From Amoeboaphelidium protococcarum X5 (Eukaryota; Fungi; Aphelidiomycota), in NCBI GenBank assembly GCA_023515725.1, contig JALDTO010000247.1, positions 1 to 64,000 of the forward strand: a stretch of 64,000 nucleotides of DNA. Direction: 5' to 3'. The position numbers were made by a program, and so were the translations under genes. Positions 30,300-34,835 of this stretch are shown piece by piece (position 1 is the stretch's first letter; each line of letters begins with the position of its first letter). The notes below the pieces were generated by a model. The model saw only the letters and a list, made by a program, of their open reading frames with translations. It did not search any database and had not been told where the DNA came from.

Positions 30300-30866
30300 T
30301 CAAACCATAGATGTTTTGACACGATCCTTCTCAACGGATTCAGCCTACACCGCCAGCTTTGGATCAGGCAGACAGTACAGCGCGACTTGTGTATGCACGG
30401 TTAGCCAGCGCATTGCGTACAAAGCAATAGTCACAATTAAGAAAAGGGTATTATTAGAGATAAATTGCTTAAGTACAAAATTGTCCAGATAAGTCCAAGA
30501 CACAATACTGAGCACATACCACGTAAAGTCGTTCTCAGACCATTGATTTACAGGCTTGAAACTGAGGTAGACGAAGATGGCATTACCGACCACAAAGATT
30601 GGCACAATTATGAATAAAGCATAGATCAAGCTCTTGGATGTCCATAGAAATGCAGCCATCAGACCGATTACAGGTGCAAATAGCAAGGAGAGGATAAGGT
30701 AGCACGCGACATTGAAGAGTAACATGCCGCGATATGATCCAGTGGCGAATAGAATCAAACCACCCATTGCCATTAAACCGGCTTGTCCAAAAGCCAATAG
30801 AACAGGCCACCACACCAACAAGTCGATTGTATTCTCTGCAAGCAATTGCGCGCCAATATAATCCAT
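30300..30866 (-). CDS. Multi-pass membrane protein of unknown function (paralog A, ~188 aa)
   Basis: Hydrophobic ORF MDYIGAQLL...; clear paralog of 33968-34543 (shared WPV, FAPV, GNA.F.YL, W.YLDN, ALY..RW, LP.P). Confidence 0.7.
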
Positions 30867-31407
30867 ACCGGGCAGGGGTGAATATTATTAAGTTGTCTGA
30901 TTCAAGAGAAAAGGAGTTGTCAAAATTCTCGGCGGCGGCGGGCTTGATTACTTGTGCACTTTTACATTCGCGTGGTTTACTGAGTCAATTACAGTTCGTT
31001 TCAGTAAAATGTCCGATCACGGAAAAGTGTTTTGGGCACAAAAAATAATGACGAAGTTTTAAGCACGATACTTCCCTACAACAGATAGTATTAGAACTCG
31101 TAATGCGAAGCATGCGTGTAATTTGAACAATTATAAGTAACTTATGTGACGTCTGTTTAGATAATGCCGCAAAGTTCTCCATTTCATTCTCCAGTGATGG
31201 AAAGTGCCAATTTCAAAGCCATCGATATTAGATTTAAGTAATCAAGTGATGGATTATAGTAATTAGAATACTTTTCCTATATATTATGTAGTTTTTGACT
31301 TTAGAAATTTTCAAACAGTGCCAAGTAATGAAATTCAATTTCATCGTTACTAAAAGCGGCTCTTACAGCGGCTAGCAAACTCCAATTACTGACTTGTTGA
31401 AAAGGCC

Positions 31408-31414
31408 TATAAAA
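31408..31414 (+). promoter_or_regulatory. TATA box upstream of Fanzor
   Basis: TATAAAA about 70 nt before ATG 31478, followed by a pyrimidine-rich leader. Confidence 0.45.
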
Positions 31415-31477
31415 GCGCCAGACAGTTCACTATTTCTTCTTCCTCTTTCTTATCTAACTTCTCATAGATAAGAAGAT

Positions 31478-33793
31478 ATGGCAAAGAAAGTAACACGTAA
31501 ATGCAAACTAAATACTGTCTTGAATCTTAGCGATGGTGATAAAGAGAGATTGATACCACAGATTCGACTGAGCTCAGTGCACCTCACCTTTGCATCCCGT
31601 CTGATCTATCTCAGTCTTAATGTATGGAATGAAGCCGGCAAGGCACTACCTGAGCTATCTCATTAGCAGTATTTCGCGTCAATGCTGGAGTATCTTTGCA
31701 ACTCTGCGTTTCATCGTGACAATGAACACACACGAATACTGGCTGAAACAATCGCTCCTGAAGTGCGATAGAGATTGAGGCACGAAAGCCTGATTGGTCC
31801 AAATCCTAACCTGTACGTGTTTCAAGCGCGTAAGATTATTTAAGCTATCACCTGGCATCTGACTGAAACTATATGGGTCTACTAGAAGAAGGTGATTAAA
31901 GCTTAAATGGAGGCCTTTAATGTAAAAGGCCGAAGGCTTACCGTGTTTCTATAGCTGCTCAACTCTTTGCTGACTGAAGAAGCTGTTAACACGATCGAAC
32001 ACTTTGGGGGCGAGTACTTGGAGATTAATCCCGCGACTCAGATACATTTGCCTCCTGATTACGAAGCTGGTGAAGATGAGGAGACAATTGCGCAATAAGA
32101 TGCTGCTATTAAGGACGAGTTGCTGCAATTGTTATAAGTTGAAGAAGTTCGGCACTTGGTCTCAATGCATCGTCACCATTTATTGGATATTGTCACCACT
32201 TCTTTTAAAGACAGAGCTCCAAGAAGGAGATACAGTAAAAGAAAAGCATAATCTCCTAGTCAGCTTCATGGACTCATCGGTTTCAAGCGATAGAAATCGG
32301 GTAAGATGAAGTAGCGTGATACCCATCAAACATACCTGCCATCAAGAGCACACCATGCATTTCAGAATTAGGAGGGCTAGAAAGTTTTGGTCCAATATCT
32401 GATGTATTTGCGTTAAACTCTCAAGGAGCTAGGCTTGCCATCATTCAAGATTTTCCCTACTGGTACCGATGTTCCGCGCCACATCTGCTTTGACAATAAA
32501 GTTTTGGCTCAGTGGGGATTTGAACAGTATCGCCTGGGCAATCAGTTGGGGGAGGAGTCGAAAGAGGAGGAGGATCAACGGTAATGTATCCTAAGGCTTA
32601 AAGTTTTGGGTCTTTAACAGCGGATGGCTCAATCTAAAAACGTCAGTGTCAGTATCACCTCTGATGGTTTTGCGTGCTCCGTGTCTGTTTCAGATTAAGG
32701 TGGGAAAGCGTATGCAAATGAAGCTTCAGACCTGCAGAGAAAAGCACGAAGCATTGACGTGTCTCAAGTAATTGTTGGGGCTTTTGCTTTGGAAAACTGT
32801 CGGAATCTCCAACAAAGATTAGATGGCTCTCGATTGATTGGCGTTGACCCTGGTAAGAAGAACGTACTGGTGTGGGGCGACGAAGCGGACGTCGATGGTG
32901 CAATTACGCTAAAAGAAGCCAAGAAGGAGCTAAAAGAAACGGGCCACATATCTGCTGGATACTGGTAACGTCTTGCATTGACTACAGAGTCTGAAGCCCA
33001 TCTGTTGCATATTAAACCAACTGAAATCACGCTGATGGAGTAAGATATGGCCTAATCAAACACTTGCCAGTAGTATCTCGATGTTTACATCAGATATTTT
33101 GAGGACGTCTATGCCTTCTACTCAAGATCATTCCATCGTAATTGGAGATTCCGACGATTTTGCGCGACCAAGTCTGCGTTTGGTAAAGTCATCGACATGA
33201 TGTATGGCAGGCCAAAGCCACCAGTGCCTAAAATCAACGATCGGCGCCGAGGTAAAGCTGCAAAGAAGAGGAAACGCGAACTGCGTAAATCTATTGGCAA
33301 GTTTTCACCTCCAGATAAGCCTCCGGTAATTGCACTTGGTGATGCTGGTGTGAAGCACGTGCGTGGTAATTCTCCTGTTCCGGTGAGAAAATTCGCGTTT
33401 GAATTCAGTCGTCGGGCATTGGTAGTTATAACGCCGGAGTTCCACACTAGCAAGCAGCACTCATTATGTCATGCAGATCTTCAATGGGAGCATGAAGTGG
33501 TGATGAGGTGCCGACACAAGAAGGCAAAGAAGATACTGCCTGGTCGTCGCCGGGCTTAAACTGTCTGCATCAAAGCTGATGGTCCAGAAACCCTATCGTA
33601 CGAATGTCCTGATCGTTTTAACCGAAGAGTCCAATCAAGATTTGGAGTTTGCCCAAACTGCCAAAACACTGGATGTGACGTCTTTGTAGATCGGGACGTT
33701 AATGCTTACAGGAGTATGGCTCAAATAGTCCGCCATTACGCGATGCATGGTAGCAGACCTTAATGGAATTGCCGCGCCGAAAGGCGCGCCTGA
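31478..33793 (+). CDS. Fanzor1-type RNA-guided RuvC endonuclease (eukaryotic TnpB homolog), 771 aa
   Basis: Single uninterrupted frame with TAR=Gln. FKIFP..VPRHICFD; ITSDGFACSV; RuvC-I LIGVDPG (D457); FYSRSFHRNWRF; VIALGDAG; RuvC-II VITPEFHTSK (E654); HSLC..CPNC Zn finger; RuvC-III DRDVNA (D740); terminal GSRP. Confidence 0.9.
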
Positions 33794-33860
33794 TATATAC
33801 AGTAATGTTTGTCGGACAAACCGATGAAATAGACTGTAAATTGTGATTATAAAGCAGTCT
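33771..33860 (+). ncRNA. Candidate Fanzor omegaRNA scaffold (plus guide) overlapping the ORF end
   Basis: CGCGCC-GAAA-GGCGCG hairpin (33773-33788); TACAGT/ACTGTA stem (33798-33838) enclosing GTTTGT-CGG-ACAAAC; AGACTG/CAGTCT stem; position typical of TnpB/Fanzor omegaRNAs. Confidence 0.55.
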
Positions 33861-33967: not shown

Positions 33968-34543
33968 TCAAGCGGTCACCTGTATAATTTTCAATGGAAC
34001 TTTTTCATCGCGATCAATTTGGGACTTCACGTCAGGCTCAGGCAAGTTTCCGTAATCGTAGAGCTTCTTGTAGACCAGTGCCCATCTGACCACGTATAAC
34101 GCGATAGAAGATGGCAGTAACAGCTACTCAGGTACAAAAGCATTCAATGTGATGTTATCCAAGTAAGACCAGGTGGCAATAGATAAAAAGAACAGAATGA
34201 AATCGCGTTCAATCCATTTATCGACAGGCAATATGCACAAGTACGGAAATACAGCGTTACCCAAGATGAAGCACGGCGATAATAGAAGCACCACTAGATA
34301 GCCTTAGTTCGTAACAATTAGTATGGCGACAATTACAATGAAGACGGGCGCAAATACCAAGCACATTGCCAACGATATCGAACCCAAGACCAAATTTTCG
34401 GCGCGTTTGCTCTTACCACCAGTACTCAAGATGCTGTACCCATATAGCAAGAGGATTACAGCTTAAATAACCGACCCTACAACGGGCCAAACGTACATTG
34501 GGTTAATTTTATTCCCAATAAACTCCACGCTAATATAGTCCAT
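33968..34543 (-). CDS. Multi-pass membrane protein of unknown function (paralog B, ~191 aa)
   Basis: MDYISVEFIGNKINPMYVWPVVG...FAPV...GNAVFPYL...WSYLDN...ALYVVRW...LPEP. Confidence 0.7.
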
Positions 34544-34835
34544 TTCAATTTGTATTTTCAAGTAATCACTTGACTAAACCGGAAAAACAAAGGCGGAGGA
34601 TAAATTGCAAGTGAAGATGTGCACCATACAGCTTTAAGCCACACGACTTCAAAATCTCCCAAGCTTCTCCCCGTTGTAGTCTCATAAGAGCATATGAGCG
34701 CCATAGCTCTTAAAAGACGCACGTAAAAAGACTTTTTTGATATCACTTAATCATTTCAATGGTGACATGAAATATAATCGTTAAGATTTCAATTTTTGAT
34801 GACTATAATATGCATTGTTAGTATAACTTATTCAC

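Follow-up and report, generated by a model that had tools for sequence, protein, structure and literature searches.

The region at positions 31478-33793 (+) raises the question of how a frame interrupted by standard stop codons could encode an intact RNA-guided nuclease, and of what would keep such a gene intact in its host. The window, which is the whole stretch of DNA that was analysed, comprises the first 64,000 nucleotides of a contig of the aphelid Amoeboaphelidium protococcarum X5.

Reading frame and genetic code

The region is a single frame of 772 codons. Fourteen TAA and nine TAG codons occur in frame, and the sole TGA is the terminal codon. When TAA and TAG (TAR) are read as glutamine (translation table 6), the frame yields a protein of 771 aa with 23 TAR-encoded glutamines and a TGA stop, as the initial annotation had proposed, and this product is identical to a public protein (P0039). 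The same annotation counted four standard-code fragments, but the frame is actually broken into 24 pieces under the standard code. Its description of the gene as intronless agrees with the continuous frame and with full-length homology, a basis that lies in sequence rather than in RNA.

The reading of TAR as glutamine applies host-wide, beyond the Fanzor gene alone. Under table 1, the window contains two stop-free frames of at least 200 aa; table 6 raises this number to about 60. When host TAR codons were compared with those of a homeolog at 90% identity, changed sites were mainly exchanges with CAR (8 of 16). Likewise, seven of the eight changed sites between the window gene and a paralog at 86% identity were TAR/CAR exchanges. 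UAR = Gln has also been published for A. protococcarum (PMC5304391). The variant code is a curiosity and not a discovery, and it shows a long residence of the gene in this lineage.

Translation appears to begin at 31478, which is the start in homologs and in the NCBI model; two in-frame ATGs lie upstream (31286 and 31328). A putative TATA-like box (31408..31414, +), by consensus match only, is located 70 nt 5' of the ATG. A bacterial promoter scan gave chance-level output, the method being ill-suited to a eukaryotic host, and ARAGORN found zero tRNA genes over the window.

The protein and its relatives

Is the product a Fanzor? The motifs that had been named for it occur at the places given (GVDPG, PEFHTS, DRDVNA, FPTG..VPRHI, TSDG, WRF, GDAG, and GSRP), and so does the RuvC triad. 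RuvC-I is represented by D457 in a DPG motif (32846..32848, +), based on position, homolog alignment, and profile. Alignment and profile assign RuvC-II to E654 (33437..33439, +), an alternative glutamate six residues N-terminal to a zinc-finger ligand, and RuvC-III to D740 (33695..33697, +). D457-P458-G459 is invariant among 12 aligned homologs, and E654-x6-H661 aligns with the E-Y-K-T-S motif of SpuFz1. Both features, the RuvC-I DPG and a glutamate that precedes the zinc finger by six residues, serve as Fanzor fingerprints (PMC10711439). D457, T657-S658, and R739-D740 conform to the Fanzor pattern D-X(125,275)-[TS][TS]-XX-C4-X(5,50)-RD, but the zinc ligands are HC3 and not C4.

These ligands belong to a TNB zinc finger, H661-C664...C725-C728 (33458..33661, +), which contains an insertion of ~45 aa. 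The insertion residues C678, H680, C697, and C710 possibly form a second metal site, and the extra Cys/His residues are common to sister families. Pfam searches with stop-free pieces and with the full protein gave zero matches; the lack of one to PF07282 is probably due to the altered, insertion-bearing zinc finger. Sister family B1 retains C at the zinc finger and matches PF07282. A basic patch at aa 589-600 (33242..33277, +) appears NLS-like.

A phmmer search of the PDB with the single protein gave zero matches, and SpuFz1 was found only by profile. In the PDB, a profile of 12 homologs placed SpuFz1 first (E 1.4e-5), followed by ApmFz2, GtFz1, and TnpB, and it aligned all three catalytic motifs. 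Further evidence comes from an AlphaFold2 model (pLDDT 74.8, pTM 0.72). Without exception, the best seven Foldseek matches of this model were to Fanzor1 structures, at E 6.7e-16 to 9.5e-11; the values then fell sharply (next match 3e-3), to Cas12 and TnpB. The model superimposed on SpuFz1 with Z 18.9 and an rmsd of 4.9 A over 534 aligned residues, and its enlarged REC/WED/RuvC fold is nearer to SpuFz1, GtFz1, and PpFz1 than to Fanzor2 or TnpB. Profile, predicted structure, and copy comparisons agree with the earlier assignment. As judged from alignment and model, the protein is a Fanzor1 and has the Fanzor1 features assessed in its sequence and fold, except a strict C4 finger.

SpuFz1 of Spizellomyces punctatus (PDB 8gkh, 9ceu-9cez; PMC10432273) shares the fold end to end as well as the triad, but the two proteins are only about 14% identical and the window protein is ~135 aa longer. 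PpFz1 and GtFz1 (PDB 9cf0/9cf1 and 9cer; PMC11423790) have the Fanzor1 fold in common with it (Z 17.7 and 14.8) at 10-15% identity. Where the window protein keeps D740 as its third catalytic residue, GtFz1 has N. Fanzor2/IS607 TnpB and ISDra2 TnpB share the RuvC-zinc-finger core, and the DPG and alternative glutamate are common with Fanzor2. However, their structural match is far weaker (Z 8-9, Foldseek E 0.02-0.15), the window protein is ~250-350 aa longer, and the window element has no serine recombinase or HUH TnpA.

The closest relatives outside the genus are about 30% identical or less, which makes this, to our knowledge, an uncharacterised branch. The protein is a genuine new member of the Fanzor1 family, a known type of system. 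It had been called hidden, which is an overstatement: NCBI nr already contains the 771-aa product, together with its copies, under the label of hypothetical proteins (MIR68_ entries of A. protococcarum), and the table of Saito 2023 includes Fanzors from the congener A. occidentale. That standard-code mining would miss it holds for ORF calling at the DNA level only, and not for protein databases. Yoon's survey mined NCBI proteins. The absence of a PF07282 match is a likelier reason for the protein having been missed. Among the main texts covered, none names both Fanzor and Amoeboaphelidium, and A. protococcarum Fanzors were not mentioned; the survey tables were covered in part, and an earlier listing in them is possible.

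Three or four further Fanzor families were confirmed in the genome. Loci L022, L023 (B1), L024, L025, L027 (B2), and L026 encode Fanzor families with 39-42% identity to the window protein, and several of them have open frames and a matching 3' hairpin layout. A 939-aa relative from an ENA metagenome (L053, P0006) has 0 TAR among 34 Gln codons, which indicates a standard-code host; it too has a matching 3' RNA layout. A four-copy element of 3.35 kb (L029-L032; e.g. L029:1938-5291) carries a Fanzor-like ORF of ~696 aa with an N-terminal CCHC knuckle that points to one end. At the opposite end lie 500 bp of decayed sequence from the 3' end of a B1 Fanzor, which gives two "right ends" per element. 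The 729-codon ORF of these loci was considered as a transposase and rejected, as it is another Fanzor-like protein. A ghost-like 0.9-kb unit (L033:1633-2526) consists of a Tc1-type left end, a B1 Fanzor 3' remnant, and a scaffold, and lacks an intact gene.

The mobile element and its predicted RNA

The gene is a eukaryotic nuclear locus inside a DNA transposon. This surrounding element is new relative to the initial annotation, and the gene is its cargo. The element is of the non-autonomous Tc1/mariner type (30992..33836, +). It is 2845 bp long, reads CAGT...ACTG, and has no transposase inside; copy boundaries, sequencing depth, and an empty site define it. The left terminal inverted repeat (TIR; 30992..31017, +) is identical at 22-24 of 28 positions to DD34E Tc1 ends in the genome. 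The right TIR (33811..33836, -) is imperfect, matching the left end at 18/28 counting the TA.

At least 10 full-length copies are 98-100% identical, and 8 of them have an unbroken frame; a subfamily at 86% identity also has an open frame. An identical copy is located ~57 kb away on the same contig, and five others compared differ by 20-23 bases. Several copies are frameshifted or truncated, and open frames are present in two strains. Contigs from sequencing runs showed ~10x depth between the element ends relative to the flanks, and junction contigs confirm the placement. One copy (L011 / G000:C264:380402-384143) contains an internal tandem duplication of ~880 bp (window 32410-33293) that breaks the frame; about 1 kb downstream of the copy there is a weak match to DDE_3. 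Near-identical element pieces at low depth were also seen in runs X5-X6, one carrying an unrelated label and the other a hot-spring metagenome.

Where does the element end and host DNA begin? A TA flanks the copies on the left in 15/15 cases and on the right in 14/15, where it represents a 3' target-site duplication (33837..33838, + in the window). The two host flanks were joined by script and compared with a homeologous locus that lacks the element. This empty site has a single TA, is intergenic between two related membrane-protein genes, and aligns ungapped when one ATTA is kept. Therefore, ATTA (30988..30991, +) is host DNA whose TA (30990-91) was duplicated, and the alternative of "AT" as part of the element was rejected. 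Empty-site patterns for three more copies gave zero matches. Right-end matches were all gene-bearing or remnant copies, with no ghost or MITE copies of the window's Fanzor family among them.

The left flanks of all 15 distinct insertions end in RTTA (13 ATTA and 2 GTTA), whereas 15.5% of the window's TA sites have this motif as background (P about 7e-13), and a copy from the second strain likewise has ATTA. The mirror of this motif (TA|AY) occurs on 0/15 right flanks. In Spu-1, the element of SpuFz1, the TAM consists of the conserved bases that precede the left end (PMC10432273). By analogy, RTTA is the predicted TAM of the window element; a Fanzor1 TAM is expected to span 4-5 nt, to be AT-rich, and to take in the 5' duplication.

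A candidate omegaRNA with two hairpins is predicted at the other end, overlapping the stop codon, as suggested by folding and by the SpuFz1 precedent. The last 79 nt are predicted to fold (z -4.6) into a GAAA-capped hairpin and a long terminal stem, which the 3' TA closes. Stem-loop 1 (33773..33788, +) would have 6 bp and a GAAA loop and lie within the last ORF codons, because just 45 nt separate the stop from the element end. Families with 39-42% protein identity retain this hairpin. Predicted stem-loop 2 (33798..33838, +; z -4.3) extends to the element end. Its terminal stem shows compensatory changes between families (A-T to T-A, G-C to A-T). The metagenomic standard-code relative has a matching layout 3' of its stop. 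The predicted guide (33839..33853, +) would be host flank that is different at every copy, by analogy with SpuFz1 (PMC10432273). An order of SL1, SL2, and then guide is the architecture of SpuFz1 and PpFz1 (PMC11423790), and a Fanzor scaffold has been described as including the 3' duplication (PMC13565253). Rfam gave zero matches for the candidate omegaRNA, and a search of the DNA compared for uncut targets of RTTA plus guide gave only chance 12-mers. The stem at the element end could in part reflect a DNA-level end structure.

The element resembles Spu-1: both are multicopy, have one ORF and inverted repeats, show conserved bases that include TA 5' of the left end, and have a structured right end followed by variable flank. 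No transposase is present inside the Spu-1 ends either (Saito 2023). The predicted RNA of the window element has the minimal SL1 and SL2 layout of PpFz1. Unlike Spu-1, the window element has the short distance from stop to end, imperfect TIRs, an H-for-C zinc finger with an insertion, TAR = Gln, and a predicted TAM of RTTA instead of CATA. The genomes also differ in that TIR-matching DD34E transposase remnants were found here and ghost loci of the window family were not. PUl-4 and PGv-1 (Bao and Jurka 2013, PMC3627910) are likewise Fanzor-only elements with mariner-type TIRs and a TA duplication; the window element differs from them in its aphelid host, its variant code, and a target motif that on one side, but not on the other, reaches past TA to RTTA.

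Is the nuclease active? Every family A protein checked has an intact D-E-D triad. The gene is under purifying selection, as dN/dS against three older copies is 0.13-0.20 (dS 0.40-0.48). This selection, the young copies, the TAM-like motif, and the omegaRNA-like fold make a potentially active nuclease plausible on sequence grounds. However, an intact triad is no guarantee of activity, because CrFNuc-1, a Fanzor1, showed zero cleavage in vitro (PMC10530073). The protein is a candidate editor from a distant Fanzor1 branch whose TAM (RTTA) and compact scaffold, like the protein itself, are predictable from genome data.

Proposed role of the Fanzor in the element

How could a passenger nuclease come under purifying selection? 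Restorative homing would explain it. In the mechanism that we consider probable, a DD34E Tc1 transposase encoded elsewhere would act in trans to cut the element and paste it into RTTA sites. A scaffold of ~65-80 nt, from the ORF end to the right TIR and 3' TA, together with ~15 nt of flank as guide, would load the protein. The resulting RNP would cleave element-free insertion sites (RTTA and then the flank) on the sister chromatid or homolog, and repair of the break off the filled allele would copy the element back, restoring or spreading it. RNA production, cleavage, and homing are reasoned here from SpuFz1 and TnpB, and the literature covered holds no demonstration of homing by any Fanzor. 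It is a long shot that the Fanzor1 RNP sets the one-sided RTTA preference in cooperation with the in-trans transposase, or that Fanzor-driven homing can be observed directly here, filled and empty homeologous sites occurring side by side in a hybrid-like genome.

Elements with related ends exist in the genome. The ends of the DDE_3 elements L043 and L034 match the left end of the window element at 22-24/28, and L034 has D-D34E spacing. An intact matching transposase was not found among the DDE_3 matches examined, in a search that gives a lower bound; L034 lacks a usable N-terminus and L043 is frameshifted. Two copies have TA-CAG-TA on their right flanks (L007:4338-4344 and L011:5230-5236; chance P about 0.002), which resembles a Tc1/mariner excision footprint. 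These flanks hint at excision and re-entry of the element. One genome combines DD34E Tc1 elements whose ends nearly match, both filled and empty sites, and junctions that resemble footprints, which offers a test of the Fanzor's role in its host. About 10 tandem units of ~177 bp with 84-88% identity lie between two outward-facing Tc1 ends at L033:4567-6404.

One alternative is that the element is a recently silenced or inactive passenger, its gene intact merely because the burst is young. RNA sequencing runs containing the locus were not found, several copies are broken, and so are the matching transposases found. However, low dN/dS across subfamilies at a dS of about 0.4-0.5, open frames in two strains, and the identical pair on one contig, a sign of very recent copying, make this explanation unlikely. 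It is also doubtful that the Fanzor1 RNP binds but cuts weakly or never, mainly biasing landing or orientation at RTTA for the Tc1 transposase. The one-sided motif (RT|TA on the left, no TA|AY on the right) points in that direction, as does the absence of RTTA flanks from transposase-bearing elements with related TIRs, and the zinc-finger insertion could serve as an interaction surface. Yet the fully conserved triad is expected for a nuclease, and Spu-1 is equally one-sided (CA before the inverted repeat) although SpuFz1 is an active nuclease (PMC10432273). Asymmetric TIRs or later homing selection can also yield one-sidedness, and the true transposase may itself favour RTTA.

A decayed pseudogene or endogenous-virus gene with TAA and TAG as true stops has almost no chance of being correct: the 23 in-frame standard-code stops and nearest Atlas clusters that are mostly Nucleocytoviricota would fit it, but in-frame TGA is absent, TAR makes up 47% of Gln codons compared with 60% in host genes, the host-wide code, codon swaps, and copy comparison reject the pseudogene, and ordinary flanking genes reject a viral insertion. 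The window neighbours are eukaryotic housekeeping genes (methylmalonyl-CoA mutase, a translational GTPase, GH15, an aldo-keto reductase, and WD40), which places the locus on a host chromosome. The genes that flank the element directly (30303-30866, -, and 33971-34648, -) gave no Pfam match in the piece tested and look like tandem paralogs for a small membrane protein. L016 and L017 are homeologous copies of the window region, at about 78% and about 90% identity, and reads contain a further variant at ~92%. This pattern would fit a genome that is duplicated or hybrid.
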